Source of the DNA: Paramoeba atlantica | Lineage: Eukaryota > Protista > Discosea | Reading direction: 5' to 3' | Length of the DNA: 64,000 nucleotides | Assembly (NCBI GenBank): GCA_977017575.1 | Contig: CDRNVI010000014.1 | Location: 455,507 to 519,506 of the forward strand | Shown here: positions 4,783 to 64,000 of the stretch, piece after piece | Numbering within the stretch: position 1 is the stretch's first letter | Layout: each line of letters opens with the position of its first letter | Program-made: the position numbers and the translations under genes | Notes under the pieces: model-generated | Told to the model about the DNA's origin: nothing | Database searches by the model: none | Seen by the model: the letters and a program-made list of their open reading frames with translations, nothing else

Positions 4783-4816
4783 TGAAGAGTAAACGATTAG
4801 AAAATAATCAACAAGG

Positions 4817-10384: not shown

Positions 10385-13300
10385 TTATGCCCCTACCAAA
10401 GACCCCGCTGGATCCGCCACGGGGATGCGTGACACCATCATCCGGGCCTGCGAACGCATGAGCGTAACATTCAGCTCCGTCAAGAGTTCATTTCGCGCTT
10501 GGCTCCGTGACAGAAACCCCTTGGACGCATTCGCCCGTTGCGTTCCGATATCCCGGAGTAACGCTAGGGCACTTTCACTCCAGGACCCAAAGGACTCTAC
10601 AACCATTGCTGTGAAGAGATGCCCGGCTTCGTCTGCTTCTTGTCGCTGTCGCGCCTTGGTCTCGGCATAGTGCGCGGCAAAAGACCCTGGGGTCACCCAG
10701 CTAGCATTACGGACTGAGTCCAAATACTTTAATTGCTGGGCGTGGGTGACCGCAAAGTCCAATACCATGCCTTGCGCCCGAGTCCCTTTTGCCAAGGATG
10801 CAGTGGGCAGGAAGACATCCGCAGGCCTCGTGAGAGCTCCTCCGGGGCCTCGGTTTCCGAGACTCATCTCGCGCCGTGGTCCCAATTGGGCCTTGGAACA
10901 GAAAGATGTGAATTGTTGTGCCAGGGAGTTGTGGCGGGCGATGATGCCATGCCCATTTTTACAGAGCAAGGCGTGTTCACCGTTCTTGAGGAGAGGGAGG
11001 GCACAGCCTTCGGCGGGACAAGGCCTATCCTCTGGGAAAACATCCACCCCCAACCACCAACGTGATAGCGTCCGGAACTCCGTGGGGGTGAAAGCCAACC
11101 CTCTTTGCTTTGAGGGTGTCACAAAAACCCAGTTTCCGGCCCCTTTACCTGACTGAGAAACCCAGCGTGCCCTTGTTCGGGCGTCTGCCCTTGCGTAAGC
11201 AGCATAGAACTCCTGTTCAGCGATTGCGTGGCTCAGGTGTTTTTGTCGTGGTACGATGGTTTCTGGTTCTGTGGTGTCGGGTAAAAGGGGGTGGCGGAGG
11301 GAATGGGAAAGTTTTCTTTTCGCCGGGCGTGACTGGGCGTCCCGTGCCTCGTTGTGGTAGTCTGGTGAGCTTGGCTTGAGGATACGTCCAGTATACAGAT
11401 CGACCAGGACAGTCCCAACTTTTTGATTTATTTCGCGTGCCGAATCAAGAAACCCTTCAGCTTCGGCTGCATCCCACTTATCCTTGTCGGAGGCAAAAGC
11501 CACAGAAGAAACGTATGCGGCCGAGTGGTGAAGCAACGATGAGCGAAGGCCGAATCCCCCGTAACGTTTGGGCCGTTGTAGTTGGTCAAGGGCGGGAAGA
11601 TCAAGAGGAAAAAGTGCGTGTTCCACAGCGCGCATGAGGTGAAAATCCAGCTGACGACAGAGTTCTCCGAGGCCTTGGGGAGGGGTGGTACGCAGTGCGT
11701 ATACCATTTGGCAGAATCCGGCGCACTGCCTTATAAGGGCGAGGGCCACTTGCGGGTCTTCTATCAGGGAAATGGCTTCCAACGTATCGCGGGCTGGCTC
11801 GATCGCGTGTGTCCTTAGGAAATTCGCACAGTGTTCTGGAGAGCCCACCGGACTCCCAAGGATATCAAAGTTTCCGTCATACCTTATTTTGTCGCTAGGA
11901 ATGTCGGGGAAAAAAGCAGAGGTGTGGGCAGACGCAGGGGGGGTGATGATTTCACATTTTGAGAGGTTCAGAAAGAGTCCCCACTGAGTTCCCACTTCCG
12001 CGAGAACGTCTAGTGCCTTCCGGACTTCCCGTGGTTCGCCAATGATCACACCGTCATCGAGATACCATAACTGTGTTTGGAGCTTTGTACGCGATGCGAT
12101 TTCCTCCGTTGCCCCCGACAAAACCAAAGAGAACAGGAGGGGACCTAGGGGATCACCTTGCTGCACGCCCTCGGCCGAAGGAATTAAATTGTCACCAAAT
12201 GTTAGACAGCTGTGGTTGGCGTAACACCACTCAACCCATGGGGACAACTCGGGGAAATGCTTTCGCGTGAGGAAGATAAACACCGGCCTACTGACATTGT
12301 TAAAGGCGTTGCGGAGATCCACTTTACAGAAGGTTATATTTTCGTTTTCCATGTTGTTGAGCATCAACCTACGACAATTGTGAATGACTCGCTCTGCTCC
12401 GGCGGGCGCCGCGACGCCGTACTGTTTGCGGCCGAAGAAGGAACTTGCCTTTTCCTTTAAAGAAAGACACGCTGCCTTGCTGACCAAACGTCGTAGCGTT
12501 TCCCCCGCAGCAATAGGCCTCACGTCTTCTTCGTCCTTTTCGAGCGCGCAGAGTCGTGCACCTGCAAAGAAGGGGTGTACTTCATCCGGGCCTCTGCCTG
12601 CTAAAAGGTGGTTCACAAAGGACGTGAGCGCCAGGAGTGGATCCATGTACTGGTCAACATGCTCTTGCAGTGCTGCTTGTAGGTGTTCGGGTCGAAGACC
12701 CATGGTTCCGGCGGAGGAGCCGCGGTGAAAACTATTCACGGCCTTTTTTACTTCCGATTCGTCCAGCTGTAAAAAGTCTTCTTTCAATGGTGGCAAAGGG
12801 CAGGAGATAGGATTCCCGTGGGAGCTAGGATGTTTCCTTTGCAACTTTCGCAATGTTTCTTCGTTGTGCGGCGCGAGGGGAGCTGCCGTCAGGGCTGCCA
12901 TTCCTCTGGAAAATTCCCCGTCACGGACCAGAAGTTCTGCTCGTACTATAGCCTTTTCCACGTCGTTCTCGTTGCTCGTGTTCTTCGGGCGTTTTCTCTC
13001 GTGATCGGACACAGCTTGAGACCAAAGGGTCGAGTATTGTCCTTCCATCCAAAGCTCCATTCTTTTGAGAATGTACGACGAGTAAGTGATATGGGCTTTA
13101 CGGCCTCCTCGGAACGGGGCTGGAAGGACGCACTTTGGAAGTAAGGCAAGGAGCGTCCACGCCCTCACTGAATTTTCGCGCACCGCTGTGGATAGGGCGT
13201 AAGTCAATATCTGGGCCCACATGCGTCGGCATCGGTGTGGGACGTCTTTGCAGGTGTTTATCGGTGTCGTGCATATTTGCTCCAGAGAGGGTAGCTCGGC

Positions 13301-14179
13301 CGTGCCCTGAACATCGTAGATGGCTTCTCCTAGGCATTCCGAGGGTTGCGAGGGTGGAGGTGATTGCACGGCGTGCCCTTTGCATTGGTTCACGTGCGCC
13401 GTCTTTTTGTTGAGAGCGTAATGTCGACCGCATGCGGCGCACAGAAAGCGGCCCTCTTTCTCCCACCAAACACTGGAAATTGCTTCCCCATGCCTGTAGG
13501 CCACGTGGTGGTAATAGTACTGCCACTGCCCTCCGTGGGCTTGCGTCTTCCAGGTACACCCATCTGCAGGGCACTCTCGTTGCGGCGGATCTTCCTCAGA
13601 AATGGGCGGGGTCGCAGGAACCTGGTCACTTGCCAGGGTCGGGGCCTGAGGAGTGGTCACTCGTGATACGTTTTCCGTAGGTTCGAGAACGTGGGGGCCC
13701 CGCGTGGTCTTGTAGTCCGCGGTTTCCGCTTTTCTTGCATTGGCTTTCTCTCGGGCCTTCTGAGGTTTCGTAGCGCCCCGAAGCTGACCCTTAGAACTCG
13801 GAGGTGTGGCGGAAGCTCTTCGACGAGGGAATTTCTTAGCCATGGAATTATTATCAAGCTGTGTGGTATCAACTTCGAGATTCGATCTGATGAGAACACG
13901 TGAGTGGTTCGTTTCTTCGTCGCCTCCATTTTCGCATCCTGTATCAGGCGTTTGTTGTTGAGTTAAGATGGAGGCGGCATTCGCGCACCAGTCATTAGGG
14001 ACATTCGCAGGAATCGGAGTTGTATATAGCAGATCATTATACGTGCTTGGATGCTTGATGAGGTGTGCGTTTCCAGCAAATTGGTCCCAAGATCCAGGTA
14101 GATGTGTGGATTCCTCTTGTAGGAATGTATCGTCGTCCATGAGGGGAAGTGTCTCTTCGTGTGGGCTGATACCAGACAT
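10385..14179 (-). CDS. Family A ORF (~1264 aa): conserved N-terminal block, two zinc-finger motifs, RT, CCHC, RLE
   Basis: CPADGC..HVAYRH and CAACG..HVNQC; GVQQGDPLGPLLF; WYLDDG; CPAEGC..HALLC..RHN; RPADV..LDFAV..K..VESFGSW. Confidence 0.92.
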   Translation of the reverse strand: MSGISPHEETLPLMDDDTFLQEESTHLPGSWDQFAGNAHLIKHPSTYNDLLYTTPIPANVPNDWCANAASILTQQQTPDTGCENGGDEETNHSRVLIRSNLEVDTTQLDNNSMAKKFPRRRASATPPSSKGQLRGATKPQKAREKANARKAETADYKTTRGPHVLEPTENVSRVTTPQAPTLASDQVPATPPISEEDPPQRECPADGCTWKTQAHGGQWQYYYHHVAYRHGEAISSVWWEKEGRFLCAACGRHYALNKKTAHVNQCKGHAVQSPPPSQPSECLGEAIYDVQGTAELPSLEQICTTPINTCKDVPHRCRRMWAQILTYALSTAVRENSVRAWTLLALLPKCVLPAPFRGGRKAHITYSSYILKRMELWMEGQYSTLWSQAVSDHERKRPKNTSNENDVEKAIVRAELLVRDGEFSRGMAALTAAPLAPHNEETLRKLQRKHPSSHGNPISCPLPPLKEDFLQLDESEVKKAVNSFHRGSSAGTMGLRPEHLQAALQEHVDQYMDPLLALTSFVNHLLAGRGPDEVHPFFAGARLCALEKDEEDVRPIAAGETLRRLVSKAACLSLKEKASSFFGRKQYGVAAPAGAERVIHNCRRLMLNNMENENITFCKVDLRNAFNNVSRPVFIFLTRKHFPELSPWVEWCYANHSCLTFGDNLIPSAEGVQQGDPLGPLLFSLVLSGATEEIASRTKLQTQLWYLDDGVIIGEPREVRKALDVLAEVGTQWGLFLNLSKCEIITPPASAHTSAFFPDIPSDKIRYDGNFDILGSPVGSPEHCANFLRTHAIEPARDTLEAISLIEDPQVALALIRQCAGFCQMVYALRTTPPQGLGELCRQLDFHLMRAVEHALFPLDLPALDQLQRPKRYGGFGLRSSLLHHSAAYVSSVAFASDKDKWDAAEAEGFLDSAREINQKVGTVLVDLYTGRILKPSSPDYHNEARDAQSRPAKRKLSHSLRHPLLPDTTEPETIVPRQKHLSHAIAEQEFYAAYARADARTRARWVSQSGKGAGNWVFVTPSKQRGLAFTPTEFRTLSRWWLGVDVFPEDRPCPAEGCALPLLKNGEHALLCKNGHGIIARHNSLAQQFTSFCSKAQLGPRREMSLGNRGPGGALTRPADVFLPTASLAKGTRAQGMVLDFAVTHAQQLKYLDSVRNASWVTPGSFAAHYAETKARQRQEADEAGHLFTAMVVESFGSWSESALALLRDIGTQRANASKGFLSRSQARNELLTELNVTLMRSQARMMVSRIPVADPAGSLVGA

Positions 14180-14224
14180 TGAGAGTAACCCGTACCTCGG
14201 AAAGAGATGAAATAGAAAATAATT

Positions 14225-14256
14225 CAACAAGGTACAGAAACTGTATCTTTATCGTT
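14225..14256 (-). other. Spliced-leader-like sequence at element 5' end (32 nt, AACG...TTG)
   Basis: AACGATAAAGATACAGTTTCTGTACCTTGTTG contains the ACAGTTTCTGTAC core and terminal TTG of kinetoplastid/diplonemid SL exons. Confidence 0.8.
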
Positions 14257-14407
14257 CTCCCCTTTTTTTTTTTTTTTTTTCTGAGCCTTCTCCCAAAGAT
14301 CGTTCGTATTATCCTAAATCTCGCAGGCATTCTAAACACGGATAATCGTTGTGAATAATAATAAGAACTTTTAAGAGCTTTTCTAATGTGCGAACTTGTT
14401 GGTCGAC

Positions 14408-24412: not shown

Positions 24413-24445
<33 letters not shown>

Positions 24446-27356
24446 AGATAATAGGGGGGGAAGAGTACGAGTTCTAACTTTATATATGTATGTACGGTAT
24501 GACTTTCTCACTTACTTTCCCACTTGCTCAACTTCTTTCCCTCACTTCCCCCCATTTTAAAAACGAGCAAAATATATAACTAGCAAATACATGCTTTCCC
24601 ATCTTACCCACTTCCCCTTACCAATCTTACCAGCTTTCCAGGGAGGGTAAGGTCTCCCTCGGCTAGGAGGGGCAGACTTTCCCCGAACCATTCGCGCGTT
24701 CCGGACCGGGTCTTTCGACCTCTCCCAGCTTGCCTTGGTAACCCTTCTCTTGTTGTACGAGAGGGCGCAAGCAATGGGCCTGTGCCGACAGCGGCACGGT
24801 CAAAAGGTTTTTTTTTTTTTTTTTTTTTTTTGGGGGGGGGGTATACGAGTTGAAAACAAGCAATCAAATTAGCAAATCTTTTTGTTTCCACAGATGTACC
24901 TTTTGTTTTTTCTCTCAGCCCAAAACTAGCAAGGTCCATTCCCACTTCCCAACTTTCCCACTTCCCAACTTTCCCACTTCCCAACTTTCCCACTTCCCCT
25001 TACCGAACTTCCACCTTTCCAGGGAGGGTAAGGTCTCCCTCTGACTCGCCTCGCACCTACGCCACAAGAGGGTTTTTGATGATAAAGAAGGGGGGAGGCG
25101 AGGTCTTCTCCAATCCATTCGCGCTCCCATCTTCCTCATGCATGTTCCGAACCGGGTCTTTCGACCACTCCCAGCTTGCCTTGTTAACCCTTCTCTTGTT
25201 GTACGAGAGGGCGCAAGCAATGGGCTTCGTTTTGGGGCTCGTTTTTTTTTTGTTTTTTTTTTTTTTATATATGTATGTACGGTATGACTTTCTCACTTAC
25301 TTTCCTACTTGCTCAACTCGTACAAGATACAGAAACTGTATCTTTATCGTTAAAGATTTTTTTTTTTTTGTACGGTATCAGTTTTTTTTTTTTTTTTTTT
25401 TTCAAATTTATCTCTATAAATCAATCTACAACAAATCACTCTATTTGACGAAACCAAACCAAAGAAAAGAAAAAGAAAAAAAAAAAAAAATGCATCACCC
25501 TCTAATTCAGGAGCAGAGGAATCTCTGCAGAGGAATCACAATCTCTGCAGAGGAATCTTCCCTCTCCCTCCCACCACTCGTTTGGAATGTTTTTGCCGTG
25601 TCGATGAGCTACATGGTGATAAAATGCCTGCCATTTTCCGCTATGTGGTGGGGTTTTCCACGTACATCCTTCTGCTGGGCATTGACGTTCTACATCCTTC
25701 TGCTGCGTATTGGCGTTGTGGTATGTGGTAGGGGCAGAATCAGTATTCTTGCGCTTTGTAGCCTTAGTTGGAGAGAAAATGTGGGCGGATGAGGCCTCCG
25801 AAGTAATTCCCACGTTGTTTGCCACGACAAGGGAGTGATTTGTCTCTTCGTCCGCGGTCATTCTGCCTGTGTCCGGTGTAGGTTCCTCTGCCGCGATCTT
25901 GTAGGCTCTTTCGGTCCAGTGTTTAGGTACGTTTTCGGGGATAGGTGTCGTATACAAAAGTTCATTGTAGGTGCTTTGGCCGGAAATCAGGTGAGTTCCT
26001 GCGAATTGGTCCCAATCTCCGGGTTTGTGTGACTTTTGTTCCTGGCAAAAAGAGTCATCATCCATTGGTAACGCGTTGGCATCAAAGGAATCATCGGGCG
26101 GCATGGTTCGACCCTAGTAAGCAATGAAGAGAAAGAAAAATTAATTCAACAAGGTACAGAAACTGTATCTTTATCGTTAAAGATTTTTTTTTCTTTTTTA
26201 AGATTTTTTTTTCTTTTTTAAAGATTTTTTTTTCTTTACCGTTTTTTTGTTTTTAGTACTAAACCTACATACCTTAATCAAGTCGTAGTTTCTTAAATTC
26301 AATTTATAGAATGTTGTGTGTTCAAGAAACTCCAACATGAAATTTTCTTAATTTGCGTATATAGAAAACCATTTTATACATAAAATATCTTTTTTTTTTT
26401 TTATTTTTTTTTTTATAATAGGGGGGGAAGAGTACGAGTTCTGACTTTATATATGTATGTACGGTATGACTTTCTCACTTACTTTCCTACTTGCTCAACT
26501 TCTTTCCCTAACTTCCCCCCATTTTGAAAACGAGCAAAATGTAAAACTAGTAAATGCATGCTTTCCCATCTTACCCACTTCCCCTTACCAATCTTTCAAG
26601 CTTTCCAGGGAGGGTAAGGTCTCCCTCTGCTAGGAGGGGCAGACTTTCCCCTAACCATTCGCGCGTTCCGGACCGGGTCTTTCGACCTCTCCCAGCTTGC
26701 CTTGTTAACCCTTCTCTTGTTGTACGAGAGGGCGCAAGCAATGGGCCTGTGCCGACAGCGGCACGGTCAAAAGGTTTTTTTTTTTTTTTTTTTTTTTTGG
26801 GGGGGGGTATACGAGTTGAAAACAAGCAATCAAATTAGCAAATCTTTTTGTTTCCACAGATGTACCTTTTGTTTTTTCTCTCAGCCCAAAACTAGCAAGG
26901 TCTATTCCCACTTCCCAACTTTCCCACTTCCCAACTTTCCCACTTCCCCTTACCGAACTTCCACCTTTCCAGGGAGGGTAAGGTCTCCCTCTGACTCGCC
27001 TCGCACCTACGCCACAAGAGGGTTTTTGATGATAAAGAAGGGGGGAGGCGAGGTCTTCTCCAATCCATTCGCGCTCCCATCTTCCTCATGCATGTTCCGA
27101 ACCGGGTCTTTCGACCACTCCCAGCTTGCCTTGTTAACCCTTCTCTTGTTGTACGAGAGGGCGCAAGCAATGGGCCTCGTTTTGGGGCTCGTTTTTTTTT
27201 TGTTTTTTTTTTTTTATATATGTATGTACGGTATGACTTTCTCACTTACTTTCCTACTTGCTCAACTCGTACAAGATACAGAAACTGTATCTTTATCGTT
27301 AAAGATTTTTTTTTTTTTGTACGGTATCAGTTTTTTTTTTTTTTTTTTTTTTTTTC
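24030..27356 (-). repeat. Mosaic of poly(A)-terminated 3'-UTR modules with an internal ~0.8-kb duplication (24560-25380 and 26540-27356)
   Basis: Repeated ccattcgcgcgttccggaccgggtctttcgacc, aatcaaattagcaa and gtacggtatgactttctcac blocks separated by T-runs; SL-like copies at ~25322-25356 and ~27271-27305. Confidence 0.85.
25502..26183 (-). mobile_element. Family A 5' fragment with complete 37-nt SL (26147-26183), UTR and N-terminal ORF
   Basis: MPPDDSF..WDQFAG..YNELLYTT..PTPDTG..CPAEGC..HVAHRH; truncated within the second zinc finger. Confidence 0.88.
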
Positions 27357-32772: not shown

Positions 32773-32806
32773 TCTTAACACCAAAGAAGCTAACAGGCAC
32801 TTGTTG

Positions 32807-33033: not shown

Positions 33034-33510
33034 TCTTTAACGATAAAGATACAGTTTCTGTACCTTGTTGACTATATTTTATCTCATATTTTTCCCGGGT
33101 ACACGGCTACCTTAATGTCCGGAGACCACCACTTTGAAGAGTCAACGCAAATGGAAGAAGATTCGTTCCTGCAAGAAGAAGCAGCGCACCAACCAGGATC
33201 CTTGGACCAATTTGCGGGGAATGCTCAACTAATCAAACAGCCCACCTAATATAACGAATTGCTATACACCACACCGATCCTGGAAAACATCCCTGAAGAC
33301 TGGTGTCAGAAAGCCACCTTAATTTCGACTGACCAGCAAACACCAGACACTGGACACAGAAATGACGGCGACGAGGAAACGACCCACGCACGCGTTCTCA
33401 TCAGCACAAATCACAGCTCACGAACAACACAACCCACTAATGTTTCAGTTTCGAAAAAAATTTCCCGTCGCAAGTCACCGGCCACATCTCCGTGTGCTAA
33501 AGGACAACGC
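33034..33510 (+). mobile_element. Family A 5' fragment with complete 37-nt SL (33034-33070), ATG 33115 and in-frame TAA at 33247
   Basis: MSGDHHF..LDQFAG..PT*YNELLYTT..QTPDTG..EETTH. Confidence 0.88.
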
Positions 33511-36140: not shown

Positions 36141-36239
36141 ATATGTATATGTGCCCCGTAGGGCCACGGTCAAAGAATAAATATTTTCAACAAGGTACAG
36201 TTTTTTTGCCAACAAGGTACAGTTTTTTGCCCCCCTGTA

Positions 36240-48448: not shown

Positions 48449-51400
48449 TTTTTTTTTTTTTTTTTTTTTATAAAACGCGGCATTGCCTCTATATTTTTAC
48501 TCAGTAGACGAACCAAGTTGGTCCATTGGGGGGGGTATATGATTTGTAAACAAGCACTAAAATTAGCAATTTCACATTTTTTTTTTTTTAAAGTTAGGCT
48601 CAAAATAGAAACAAGCAACTGTACGAAAAGTAAAAGAATGTTCAACCGAGCAAACGGCCCAAAAAACAGCAAATAAGAACCCGTTCCAACCCCCAAAAAA
48701 AAACCTTCCCCAAAAAACGAATACCCAAAGCCCCAAAAAGAAACCACCCGAGAAAACCAGCAAATAGAAACGAGGTCTTGACACCGACTCCTTCACTTTC
48801 CTACTGAGCTCCTACTCCTCTTTTCCGTAACCTAAGAGCACTGTGTCAGGGGCCGCCGCTGGGGATCGTAATACAAGCATGCGAGCTTGCGACCTCATGA
48901 GGGTAATGTTGAGAGATGAAAGGAGGTGATGCAAGGCATCGCTTTTAGGGAGGGTATCCCCTGAGTTCGCCGACTTTCTAGTTGAAATTTCCCTAAGAAC
49001 CGCCATGGCGCTGGGACTCCAGGCGCCATAGGACTCTACTACCATTGCCGCGAACTTGTACCCAGCCGTGTTAGCCTCTTCCCGTTGTCTTCTCTTGTTT
49101 TCGGTAGCATAGCGCTCCGCAAATGACCCGGCCGTCACCCCGTTAGCGTCACGGACTGAGTCCGTATATTTTTGTTGCTGTACATGGGTGACGGCAAAGT
49201 CAAGCACAAGACCCTCGCCAAGCCCGAAATTTTTAATGAAGACATCACCAGGCCTGGTGAGGGCGCCCCCGGGCCCCTTGTTTCCCAAGCTCATTTCCCT
49301 CTGGGTAGTGAACCCAGCCTTAGAACATTCAGAAGAAAATTCTGCGGCCAGGGCATTATGCCGCGAGGTGATACCATGTCCACTTTTGCAAGCCAATGCG
49401 TGATCGCCCTCAGGACCCAACGGTTGGGTGCACTTCTCCATGGGACAAGATCGGGGACCCGGATATATTTGCTCCCCTAGCCACCAACGTACCAGAGTCC
49501 GAAACTCGGTTGGGGTATAAGCGTGGCCGTTCTTTTTCGACGGCAATACAAAAGCCCATTCTGCTGCTCCGTGCCCCGTTTCCGAAATCCATCGAGTCCT
49601 CGTACGTGGGTCAGCGAGGGAGAGTGCTTGATGAAACTCGTGAGATGAGATTGCATCGCTTAGATCTCGTTGCCGAGGGATTACTGATTCGGTACTGGAT
49701 TCTGTAATGCCACGTTTACTGAAAGGCGGAGTGGATGACAAGGCGAAACCTTTCAGTATTCTCCCTGATTGAATGTCTACGATGTCTTTCCCCACCCTTT
49801 TATTGACATCGCTTACGGCTTCTTCGAAACCTTCTGCCTCCGTGGGGTCCCAGCGATCTAGCTCCGATGCAAATGCGACAGAGGCGATATAGGCTGAAGT
49901 AGAGTGCTCTTCCGCGGAACGGAGTCCTAACCCGCCAAATCGCTTGTTTCGTTGTGTTTGACGGCGGGCCTCGGGGGTCAGCGGACGGAAAAAGTTCTCT
50001 ACCGCGCGTTGCACGGCGTCGTCCAAGCGCCGACAGAGATCCCGAAGTTCAGATGTTGGGGTTGTTCGTAGGGAGTAAACCATCTGGCAGAAGCCAGTGC
50101 AGTGACGAATGAGGGATAAGGCAACCTGGGGGTCTTCGAGGTGCGTTATAGCGTCCAGAGAATCTTCTGCCATTTCGACTGCATTGTTGACGAGATATTC
50201 ACGACAAAACTCTGGCGATCCAACGGGGCTTCCCAGAATGTAAAAATTGCCTTAGAGGTTTTTGTTAGGGCCAGGGAGATCGGGAAAAACAGAAGAACGA
50301 TGAGAAGATGCTGGGTGGGTAATAATCTCACATTTTGCAGCGTTGAGGTGTAGGCCCCATTGTGGACCCTTCATTTCGATAACGTCGAACGCGTGTCGCA
50401 CATCACAGGAAGTGCCAGCCAAAACGCCATCATCCAGGTACCAGAGGTTTAGGTCTAATTTGGGGGCTGCTGCGTGAATTTCTGAGGCGACTTCCCTCAT
50501 GACTAACGAGAAAAGAAGAGGGCCCAAAGGGTCCCCTTGCTGGACACCCTCACGAGATTTAATAACGCGTGTTCCAAAGGTAAGCTTACTTTCCGAAGTG
50601 TAGCACCATTCGACGTAAGGAGTAAGCGTGGGGAAATGCTCGCGTGTTAGTGCTATGAACCAGTCCCTTGAAACTTGGTTGAAGGCATTACGTAGGTCGA
50701 TTTTACAGAGAACAAAGTCGTCATCTTCCGTGCGAGCAGCAAAGGCCTGGCGACACAGATGTATAACTCGCTCGGCCCCGGCGGGCGTGGCTACCCCGTA
50801 CTGGTGGCCTTTGAAAATTTTGCGGGCTCGCGCTTTTACTGATAGGCAGGCCACTTTACTCACCAGACGGCGGAGCGTTTCTCCAGCGGCTATTGGGCGC
50901 ACGTCGTGTTCTCCCTTTTCCAAAGCACATAGCCTTCCTCCGGCAAAGTGGTCTTGAACGTCGAGTGGTAACTTCCCAGCGAGCATATGGTTGGTGAAAT
51001 TTGTGAGCGTGCCCAGTGGATTTGTGTGCCCGTCATTGTGATATTGCATTGCCGCTTGCACGTGTTCTGGGCGGAGGCAAAGTGCGCCACCTGATGATCC
51101 TCTGTGGAAGGTTGAGAGCGCAGCTGCGACTTCTTCCTCGGTGACTTTGAGCGGTTCTGTTTCCGGAGTTAAGCTGGGGGATGTTGTGGATGCGGAGATT
51201 CGTGGGGGGTGTTTGGCCTGAAGTTTGGCGTACGTGTTGTCGTCGTCTGGTGCTAGCGGCGAAGAAGTCAGTGCGGTCATGGCGCGAGAAAGTTCTCCGT
51301 CGCGGGCCAGTCGCTCCGCGCGAAGACACGCTTTCTTCTCCTCGTCTTCTAGGCTTGTTGCTTGCGCAGCACGTTTCTTACGATTCAAAGTCTTACATGT

Positions 51401-52888
51401 TTCGTTCCAAAGTGATAGATATTGTTTTGACGACCATTTGGCTAGACATTTCCGGACGTGTGAAGCGTAAGAAGTTTTCGCCCTATGACCTCCGCGCCTT
51501 GGGGCCGGAAACACACACTTTGGCAACATTGCAAGGAGCGTCCAAGCCTTAGTCGTGTTTTCCCGGACAGCTGAGGATAGACATTCGCAGAATATTTTGG
51601 CCCATGCTTGTCGGCAACTGTTTGGAATATCCTTGCAGGTGTTGATAGGCGCGGAGCATATGGAGGCTAGGGGCGGCAGAGGTTCGTCGATACTCATCTT
51701 TCCATTCTTGGCCTCTAGGTCAGCGGCTGTCTGTGCAGGTAAGGTGACGACTTCGGTTTGGGCGGCGCGCTCTGAGGGAGTAGTGGTTGCAGAATTGGTA
51801 GGGGCAACGGGTGCTTTCTGTTCTCGAGAGCGTGAGAGTTGAGAGGGTGAGAGTTGAAACTCGCAATGTTTCTCATGGGATTCTTGCTTTCCTAAGTCAT
51901 AGTGTCTGCAGCATTTTACACACAGAAATCTCCCTTCCCCTGTCCACCAAGAGTCTGAGACTTCCTCCCAGTGCTTGTGGGCAACATGGTTATAAAAAGC
52001 TCGCCATTGGCCACCGTGTGGCCCCGTCTTCCATGTACACGTCTCCACTGGACAGTTTCGCTCTTTGATCTGTTGGGTGTCCGTCGTCACATTTGCGGTC
52101 GATAAGCCATTGGCCGTTTCGGTGGTAAGCTCGCGACGCTTGCGTTTTCCATCTGGGGATTCAGAAGCGCTGTCGTTGGGAGGGCATTCTGGGACTGCAC
52201 CATCTCCACTGTCGGTTTCGGACTCTAGGTCTACTCGGGAGTGACGGTCGCTCTTGGGGTGCTTTTTCTTTTTTCGGCCTCCAGGGCTTCTGCTGACAGT
52301 AAAATCCAGGTCCTGTGGCGTGAGGTCAGGGAAAATGACTCTTTGCTCGTCATAGTTGTAACCATTCTGATTAGTTTTTCGGAGATATTTCCCTTTCACA
52401 GCCTGATTTGAAATCGTGAGTTGGCTGGGTGAAGAGGTTCCTAGTCCGGAGAACTTGAGAACAGAGTTTAATTCCTCATCATGACGAACATTGGAGTGAA
52501 CATCCGCTTCCGACATTCCTTCAACGTTCCCCGTATCTGGTGTAGGGCCTGCGCGCGATTTGATGATACTTCGAGCGATTTCTTCGGATCGCTGTGTCAA
52601 TTCCGGAGGAAGATCGTCAGGAAGTTTAGTAGTATACAGCGCCTCATCATATGTGCTTTCCCCGATCGTGAGGTGTTTGTTCGCTTCAAATTGATCCCAA
52701 GAACCCAATTCGTGTGAGGCGGCCTCGTCACCAAAGTTTGATTCTCGCTTTGCTTCGGGGTGTGTCGTGGAATGGGTCGTCGTTTTGTCGGCGTCGGGCA
52801 TAGGGGGGGAGGCTCGTGCCTGAAAAGTAATTGAAATGAAGAAAAATAATTCAACAAGGTACAGAAACTGTATCTTTATCGTTAAAGA
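48449..52888 (-). mobile_element. Full-length family A element (SL 52852-52888, ATG 52801, poly(A) 48449-48469) with a single in-frame TAA at 50252-50254
   Basis: 50252-52801 and 48812-50251 are one frame: NKNL*GNFYILGSPVG; all RT/CCHC/RLE motifs present. Confidence 0.9.
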
Positions 52889-52901: not shown

Positions 52902-53017
52902 AACACACTTTTTATAAAGAACACACTTTTTATAAAGAACACACTTTTTATAAAGAACACACTTTTTATAAAGAACACACTTTTTATAAAGAACACACTT
53001 TTTATAAAGAACACACT
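52902..53017 (-). repeat. 18-bp tandem array (tctttataaaaagtgtgt on minus strand) x6
   Basis: Lies between a poly(A)-ended 3'-UTR module and the SL of the next element. Confidence 0.95.
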
Positions 53018-54218: not shown

Positions 54219-54250
54219 CAACAAGGTACAGAAACAACAAGGTACAGAAA
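54219..54250 (-). other. Two tandem 16-nt SL 3' halves (TTTCTGTACCTTGTTG x2) at the edge of the 10-mer array
   Basis: caacaaggtacagaaa at 54219-54234 and 54235-54250. Confidence 0.85.
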
Positions 54251-63200: not shown

Positions 63201-64000
63201 AAGAAAGAGGAAGAAAGAGGAGAAAGAGGAAGAAAGAGGAAGAAAGAGGAAGAAAGAGGAAGAAAGAGGAAGAAAGAGGAAGAAAGAGGAAGAAAGAGGA
63301 AGAAAGAGGAAGAAAGAGGAAGAAAGAGGAAGAAAGAGGAAGAAAGAGGAAGAAAGAGGAAGAAAGAGGAAGAAAGAGGAAGAAAGAGGAAGAAAGAGGA
63401 AGAAAGAGGAAGAAAGAGGAAGAAAGAGGAAGAAAGAGGAAGAAAGAGGAAGAAAGAGGAAGAAAGAGGAAGAAAGAGGAAGAAAGAGGAAGAAAGAGGA
63501 AGAAAGAGGAAGAAAGAGGAAGAAAGAGGAAGAAAGAGGAAGAAAGAGGAAGAAAGAGGAAGAAAGAGGAAGAAAGAGGAAGAAAGAGGAAGAAAGAGGA
63601 AGAAAGAGGAAGAAAGAGGAAGAAAGAGGAAGAAAGAGGAAGAAAGAGGAAGAAAGAGGAAGAAAGAGGAAGAAAGAGGAAGAAAGAGGAAGAAAGAGGA
63701 AGAAAGAGGAAGAAAGAGGAAGAAAGAGGAAGAAAGAGGAAGAAAGAGGAAGAAAGAGGAAGAAAGAGGAAGAAAGAGGAAGAAAGAGGAAGAAAGAGGA
63801 AGAAAGAGGAAGAAAGAGGAAGAAAGAGGAAGAAAGAGGAAGAAAGAGGAAGAAAGAGGAAGAAAGAGGAAGAAGAGGAAGAAAGAGGAAGAAAGAGGAA
63901 GAAAGAGGAAGAAAGAGGAAGAAAGAGGAAGAAAGAGGAGAAAGAGGAAGAAAGAGGAAGAAAGAGGAAGAAAGAGGAAGAAAGAGGAAGAAGAGGAAGA
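54255..64000 (+). repeat. Pure polypurine 10-mer array (AAAGAGGAAG)n, >=9.7 kb, runs off the window
   Basis: Direct reading; the only variants are scattered short deletions. Confidence 0.97.

Follow-up and report, generated by a model that had tools for sequence, protein, structure and literature searches.

Every kinetoplastid mRNA receives a spliced leader (SL) by ordinary trans-splicing, and retrotransposons that live under polycistronic transcription need a defined, capped 5′ end. Three solutions to this 5′-end problem are known: an internal promoter (Pr77), a ribozyme (R2 and L1Tc), and residence in SL genes (SLACS/CRE). Here, we analyzed a stretch of 64 kb (C14:455507-519506; below, "the window" means this whole stretch) from a genome assembly of 45.7 Mb in 248 contigs. 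The host, a kinetoplastid-type protist, has many retrotransposons that start with a DNA copy of the leader. A leader encoded within hundreds of element copies would be a fourth solution; the literature that we searched does not describe any kinetoplastid retrotransposon with a complete DNA-encoded leader at its head.

CRE-clade elements are inserted at a fixed point of SL genes (PMC12278014), and SLACS RNA reportedly begins with SL-gene sequence (PMC3447711). Like SLACS, CRE1, CRE2, and CZAR, the elements described here are retrotransposons lacking long terminal repeats (non-LTR) with a reverse transcriptase (RT), zinc fingers, a restriction-like endonuclease, a poly(A) tail, and a close tie to the SL (PMC3447711, PMC12278014). 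However, SLACS, CRE, and CZAR sit inside SL RNA genes at one exon point and carry only the first exon bases, whereas in the present genome the element is joined to the 3′ end of the whole exon, copies are scattered (often within poly(A) tails), and the SL genes are essentially intact. R2, which has the same type of enzyme, is cotranscribed with 28S rRNA; its RNA is released by a hepatitis delta virus (HDV)-like ribozyme, and host target sequence can be present at the 5′ end of that RNA, where it helps to form the 5′ junction. Unlike in R2, the host sequence of the present elements is that of an mRNA leader. In window positions 1 to 54400, all Rfam families, among them the ribozymes, stayed below their gathering scores, and the element 5′ ends, with their U-rich untranslated regions (UTRs) of 15 to 50 nucleotides (nt), gave no match to an HDV-like ribozyme.

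Two further systems invite comparison. In dinoflagellate DinoSL retrogenes, as here, a DNA-encoded leader at the 5′ end marks a copy of a processed RNA, and partial leaders are stacked (PMC6050394, PMC5585692, PMC12014239). In those retrogenes, however, the tagged copies are host genes and the relics lie after an AG inside the leader, whereas in the present genome the retrotransposons themselves are tagged and the commonest relic does not follow AG. L1Tc and ingi are kinetoplastid long interspersed elements (LINEs) that meet the same 5′-end problem under polycistronic transcription (PMC1874656, PMC8190864). Their answer is different, in that the internal promoter Pr77 of L1Tc yields unspliced transcripts (PMC1874656, PMC8190864) and the element DNA contains no SL.

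Leader copies in the window and the genuine SL RNA genes

A 23-mer of the leader, GATACAGTTTCTGTACCTTGTTG, has four exact matches in the window, at 14225-14247 (−), 26147-26169 (−), 33048-33070 (+), and 52852-52874 (−), and two further matches with three mismatches at 25320 (−) and 27269 (−). None is expected by chance; with matches in 0 of 100 shuffles, chance and low complexity are rejected as sources of the heads. Long SL copies head four R2/CRE-type non-LTR retrotransposons, designated E1 to E4 (Table 1), and shorter remnants head at least five others; the window as a whole is a nest of such elements. A sequence-only reading of this DNA had proposed that the same SL-like sequence lies 5′ of several elements, at four full sites and some partial ones. 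All of these were located, together with three additional sites (marked in Table 1). That reading had also described the heads as always ending in TTG, followed by a differing U-rich UTR of 15 to 50 nt and an ATG and never by the GT of an SL gene intron, and this description holds for every head in the window, in which no SL intron, SL gene, or SL promoter was found.

It had further suggested that the host SL RNA gene be sought and its exon compared. The genuine genes lie in arrays on C97, C107, C74, C11, C3, and C24, each unit of which contains a 5S rRNA gene on the opposite strand, and the exon is identical; the statement that no SL gene array is present is accordingly true of the window only. 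The exon, AACTTTAACGATAAAGATACAGTTTCTGTACCTTGTTG, is 38 nt long and has a conserved upstream promoter region in 34 copies, and the intron starts with GTATGAGAAGC (39 copies in a genome-wide pattern count). The first 121 nt of the SL RNA form three stem-loops, with the splice site in the first (fold z = −6.3). Compared with the functional SL gene exon at L036:1482-1519, the window sequence is identical at 36 of 36 bases. The window sequence is the organism's true SL exon, since other parts of the genome hold SL RNA genes that have a promoter region, a GT intron, and a linked 5S gene.

Across the whole genome, the 23-mer occurs 828 times. Because only 189 of these occurrences continue directly with GT, and these represent the SL RNA genes plus one dispersed, noncoding family resembling short interspersed elements (SINEs), about 640 SL copies lie outside both. 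The SINE-like family (L031 to L042 and about 150 more sites) starts at approximately SL base 11, continues with GTACATTTT, and contains nested hairpins; its SL part is mutated, in contrast to the heads of the LINEs.

Some SL units depart from the usual form. Mini units of 297 bp (176 nt of promoter and 121 nt of SL RNA), found at C11:3493-4109 and C24:267208-267504, adjoin normal units of about 2.56 kb, and two of the units on C74, each 7.3 kb long, have 4.6 kb inserted into the spacer. The SL exon and intron without the SL promoter occur at C83:132963-133065, C6:27054, C87:74357, C87:106915, and C25:199046; the first of these, which comprises SL RNA bases 4 to 106 only, is probably a retro-copy of unspliced SL RNA. 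In a tandem array of 5,093-bp units (L001 to L004; C1:8252-26552), TGA plus SL bases 3 to 38 lies between direct copies of a 34-nt sequence, an arrangement that possibly arose when an SL alone was inserted with duplication of its target and the whole was later amplified.

The open reading frame (ORF) of E1 has N-terminal zinc fingers, an RT, and C-terminal CCHC and restriction-like endonuclease motifs. Its best solved relatives are R2 reverse transcriptases, and its 23 database relatives are all unnamed RT proteins. RVT_1 is found in the ORFs behind the heads, and the CCHC and RHN...D motifs are legible in the translations. The elements show the domain set used to define the CRE clade, in which an RT is combined with a C-terminal CCHC motif and restriction-like endonuclease, an APE domain is absent, and the element ends in poly(A). 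Judged by domains, motifs, and solved relatives, the E1-type elements are classed as R2/CRE-type non-LTR retrotransposons at the level of the R2/CRE superclade. A fixed insertion position inside SL RNA gene exons was not seen; the copies are flanked by poly(A) tails, by other elements, or by unique DNA. E4 has the same layout as E1, ending in a U-rich 3′ UTR and poly(A) (48577-48589); next to it, 3′ fragments of other elements, all short and poly(A)-tailed, form a chain. The head region of E3 is 72.6% identical to positions 13879-14256 of the window. An atlas search with one SL-headed ORF of no assigned family gave no match. A relative of the E1 protein from another organism (L074, a Logan contig of SRR22388088; 39% identical) likewise lies after an A-run, and its leader is a different 70-nt sequence without the kinetoplastid SL core.

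Heads read as the ends of reverse-transcribed RNA

We surveyed 56 distinct heads, taken from 72 loci plus the window. An exact match to the SL begins at base 1 in 11 of them, at base 2 in 3, at base 3 in 27, at bases 4 to 5 in 6, at base 7 in 6, and later in 3, such that 47 of the 56 reach SL base 5 or an earlier base and base 3 is the mode. The base before CTTTAACG (SL position 2, which is A in the gene) was read in 41 heads, of which 22 have T, 14 have A, 5 have C, and none has G; the base preceding SL position 2 is variable among heads as well. The stop at base 3 and the T at position 2 suggest that the polymerase usually halts two bases before the modified cap-proximal end and adds one letter, in which case the two features would report the structure next to the cap. 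If this is right, inheritance from copy to copy cannot by itself maintain the heads, since they would shorten; each round would need a complete leader.

In many heads (L007, L010, L025, L028, L045, L047, and window positions 26183-26240), the 5′ edge carries SL pieces that are stuttered, duplicated, or inverted, which points to template switching. An A-run lies directly before 27 of the 56 heads and is often the tail of another, older element with a recognizable 3′ end. In L064 (C41:279378-282666), comparison with the uninterrupted family sequence in public contigs places a 5′-truncated SL at the first base of the insertion, and a second public assembly record (L073) contains three more heads consisting of poly(A) and SL within 7.9 kb. 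At least 20 unrelated UTRs carry the SL, and the retrotransposons joined in this way to the 3′ end of the exon are for the most part LINEs of the R2/CRE type that encode an RT and a restriction-like endonuclease. As is characteristic of SL-relict retrocopies, a complete or truncated SL is found at the 5′ end of poly(A)-tailed copies. We consider it very probable that the heads are the reverse-transcribed 5′ ends of RNAs that bore the true SL, and an SL head would then serve as a natural tag for full-length retrotransposition events.

A different origin for the heads would be the target site; that is, the elements might insert beside a resident SL in the manner of CRE, SLACS, and CZAR, and the SL would belong to the target. 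In favor of this origin, the elements belong to the R2/CRE type, and insertion at a fixed SL position is known from the CRE clade of trypanosomatids (PMC12278014). However, no intron or remaining SL sequence was found 3′ of the elements in the window, and the full SL also comes after LRR genes, the poly(A) of unrelated elements, and flanks of other kinds. Moreover, the 5′ ends of the SL copies are ragged and bear extra letters, and the SL genes are essentially uninterrupted. Insertion beside a resident SL is, in our view, essentially excluded.

Routes of the leader onto the element RNA

The likeliest single reading, to which we give a probability of roughly 0.55, is that the leader reaches the element RNA by trans-splicing. 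Ordinary SL trans-splicing would provide the element RNA with the leader and hence with a cap, without a promoter of its own, and, through target-primed reverse transcription, the element RT would then copy the leader-bearing RNA to a point close to the cap. Captured polypyrimidine-rich spacer would be the probable source of the U-rich UTRs. Trans-splicing of the elements followed by reverse transcription of the SL-capped RNA is also the mechanism put forward in the sequence-only reading, and it is partly supported. Copying from an SL-bearing RNA by elements that do not lie in SL genes is supported by the heads; trans-splicing of the element's own transcript in each round is a proposal.

A number of observations, including those on relics given further below, weigh against trans-splicing as the route. 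A search for the E1 superfamily with 300 nt of UTR and ORF start gave 46 matches, which fall into at least four subfamilies and are only about 72% identical to E1. The SL is joined to the identical first UTR base (AATTATTTTC) in 26 of the 30 copies read, whereas of the remaining four, one has a duplicated UTR, two are truncated at the 5′ end, and one has an odd flank; none of the 30 copies read has an acceptor. The junction is unchanged between subfamilies that are about 72% alike. An intact AATTATTTTC-type UTR was found by pattern search in 33 copies genome-wide, all of them after G. None of the 33 is preceded by AG, CG, or GG, so all follow TG, the SL end, and an AG-preceded master copy was not found. 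The sequence-only reading had looked to copies with a polypyrimidine tract and AG in place of the SL, and this expectation failed in all 33. Under ordinary kinetoplastid rules, the acceptor would be the AG in which the U-rich UTR terminates (e.g., TTTCCGAG before GTACGGG in E1), yet no genomic copy has the SL joined at that point (to GTACG, GGTCG, or GCACG). Neither was there, in a small sample of 23 distinct heads, a clear case of an SL-headed retrocopy of an ordinary host gene, or a clear host-gene domain. Finally, five public sequencing runs, one of which (X5) was guessed to be RNA, were examined as Logan contigs and compared with L064; in X1, X2, and X4, the contigs are interrupted within the 38-nt SL, such that no junction is bridged and no transcript starts are readable. 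The junction, then, is passed on in one form, with the leader being made anew, and the assembly nowhere contains the expected acceptor. An invariant junction without an acceptor presents a testable puzzle, be it one of trans-splicing or of RT template switching.

The same runs offer a few positive observations. In one X1 contig, the SL plus an A is joined to L064 position 1630 directly after AG, a weak hint at an alternative acceptor. X5, the putative RNA run, gave only SL-bearing contigs, at depths of >1000, and neither SL-gene flanks nor the 5S gene nor element sequence is among them; such a pattern is expected of poly(A) RNA with the leader on abundant transcripts, but it proves little. One X5 contig contains a DNA-encoded SL with 291 nt of upstream flank, a flank that is also present in the DNA runs.

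L064 bears on another possible route, cotranscription with an SL gene. It consists, in order, of a 26-nt A-run, 925 nt of SL-gene upstream region (99.6% identical), the SL exon, and an element UTR without an intervening intron (no SL intron was found on C41), and it is interrupted at 2815 by a second SL-headed element. Its structure resembles that of a retro-copied RNA extending from SL-array spacer across the exon and into the element. The source element may have been fused to an SL gene exon, as in SLACS; alternatively, the RT may have switched onto a read-through transcript of the array. If fused sources exist, they would lie behind a complete SL exon and be transcribed from the SL promoter, obtaining the leader without trans-splicing, and the dispersed copies would be their progeny. 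An integrating cDNA with an anti-SL end could anneal to an SL gene exon and thereby recreate the fusion. Cotranscription would explain why the junction is invariant, why renewal starts from a complete SL, and why an AG acceptor is lacking, and SLACS transcription reportedly starts at +1 of the interrupted SL gene (PMC3447711). Nevertheless, 33 of the 34 assembled SL promoters lead into a normal exon and intron, the enlarged C74 units have their insert >318 nt downstream of the exon, and contig depths suggest that the arrays are not grossly collapsed. Furthermore, dozens of families with different UTRs would each require a fused source, and L064, itself interrupted, could instead be the template switch onto an array transcript. 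We regard cotranscription as an unlikely source of the heads.

The relics are informative in a different way. We defined these as SL ends with a second SL end within 14 nt, and a census revealed 79 sites. The commonest relic is the 10-nt TACCTTGTTG (41 copies), which in the SL is preceded by CTG rather than by AG. A 16-nt relic, present in about 16 copies (including window positions 54219-54250), is preceded by ACAG, and a 22-nt relic, present in 2 copies, is preceded by AAAG. Since the 41 ten-nt relics stand before at least 25 different UTRs, they must reflect independent events, and amplification of a single family is ruled out as their source; an SL gene variant with a duplicated 10-mer is likewise ruled out, given that an intron follows 0 of the 41 copies. 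Truncated heads preceded by AG are no more frequent than in a reversed-pattern control. Because most relics are not preceded by AG, repeated trans-splicing into a DNA-encoded leader accounts for a minority of them only. The rank order of the relics instead matches their microhomology with the exon end, the 10-nt form sharing TG and the 16-nt and 22-nt forms sharing G alone, which points to template switching by the RT.

This raises the possibility that renewal takes place at the level of the RT. A DNA-encoded SL would be present in a read-through transcript, and the RT would switch in register to the SL of another RNA and finish at its cap; the relics would be switches out of register. End-to-end template jumping is a property of the R2 RT. 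Approximately one-fifth of the heads show visible out-of-register switching (SL stutters and 7-, 10-, and 16-nt relics), the relic frequencies track microhomology to the exon end, and the invariance of the junction and the absence of acceptors would both be explained. However, such renewal predicts many copies with a 5′ transduced flank, and few are seen, L064 being one. It also requires another RNA for translation, and the in-register switch is itself inferred. We find this route, taken alone, rather improbable.

It is possible, although we hold the idea tentatively, that the DNA-encoded leader is a heritable 5′ module and that a complete leader is regenerated at the old junction without an AG acceptor. 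An element that had once gained the leader would then keep a self-renewing, cap-bearing 5′ end. Incoming SL RNA could replace the resident copy in register; the 5′ segment of the SL RNA intron is complementary to exon bases 21 to 32, and the SL RNA could thus pair with the resident copy. Alternatively, the RT could switch in register onto the SL of other cellular RNAs.

Further features of the window

The coordinates of the SL heads, the elements behind them, and the shorter remnants are collected in Table 1. The extent of each of the four long heads was obtained by extending the match against the SL gene exon. The E1 head is separated by GGGGAG (14257-14262) from the poly(A) of the neighboring element (14263-14280), and three stuttered units, each an A-run plus TCTTTAA, lie upstream of the E2 head (26183-26240). 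The element that E3 interrupts does not resume beyond it.

Table 1. SL heads, SL remnants, and element bodies in the window
Feature	Position	Strand	Description
8-nt SL remnant	4809..4816	−	Heads a 26-nt UTR and the ORF of an MGV..TRS-family RT element; ORF ends at 655, with RVT_1 and a C2HC finger
E1 body	10385..14224	−	45-nt U-rich UTR (14180-14224) and 1264-aa ORF (10385-14179)
E1 SL head	14225..14256	−	SL bases 7-38
Twin of the unit at 27269..27305	25320..25356	−	Additional site; within a 1-kb duplication
E2 body	25502..26146	−	42-nt U-rich UTR and truncated 200-aa ORF of the MPPDDSF family; weak LsmAD-like match
E2 SL head	26147..26182	−	SL bases 3-38
Diverged short SL-headed unit	27269..27305	−	Additional site; about 100 nt, poly(A)-flanked; SL bases 2-30, then diverges
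7-nt SL remnant	32800..32806	+	Additional site, newly found; heads a 27-nt UTR and ATG (32834) of a second MGV..TRS-family element
E3 SL head	33035..33070	+	SL bases 3-38; inserted within the coding start of another element
E3 body	33071..33412	+	Degenerate, truncated relative of E1
Two 13-nt SL remnants	36188..36200 and 36210..36222	−	GCAAAAAAA between them; head a leader connected with the C-terminal RT region of a different LINE family
E4 body	48577..52851	−	50-nt U-rich UTR, RVT_1 ORF (to 50252), second frame 48812-50173 with CCHC/endonuclease region
E4 SL head	52852..52887	−	SL bases 3-38
Two tandem 16-nt SL remnants, TTTCTGTACCTTGTTG	54219..54234 and 54235..54250	−	Head a 15-nt UTR and an ORF reaching 53538; abut a satellite

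The satellite, (GAAAGAGGAA)n, is pure G+A and extends from 54251 to the window end at 64000, a length of at least 9.7 kb; an element headed by an SL relic adjoins it. Directly upstream of the E4 head are at least five tandem 20-nt units, AAAGAACACACTTTTTAT in the plus-strand reading (52906-53010). The 1-kb duplication mentioned in Table 1 comprises 24414-25402 and 26387-27351, which are 95.9% identical, and each copy carries one of the poly(A)-flanked, SL-started units of about 100 nt, diverging after its SL bases (CTGTATCTTGTAC). Between 14263 and 22581 lie approximately four tandem units of 2,145 bp that are 99.8 to 99.9% identical, each corresponding to the 3′ part of an RT element and ending in its own poly(A), which differs in length (18 to 25 A residues), such that the region forms a tandem array of 5′-truncated copies.
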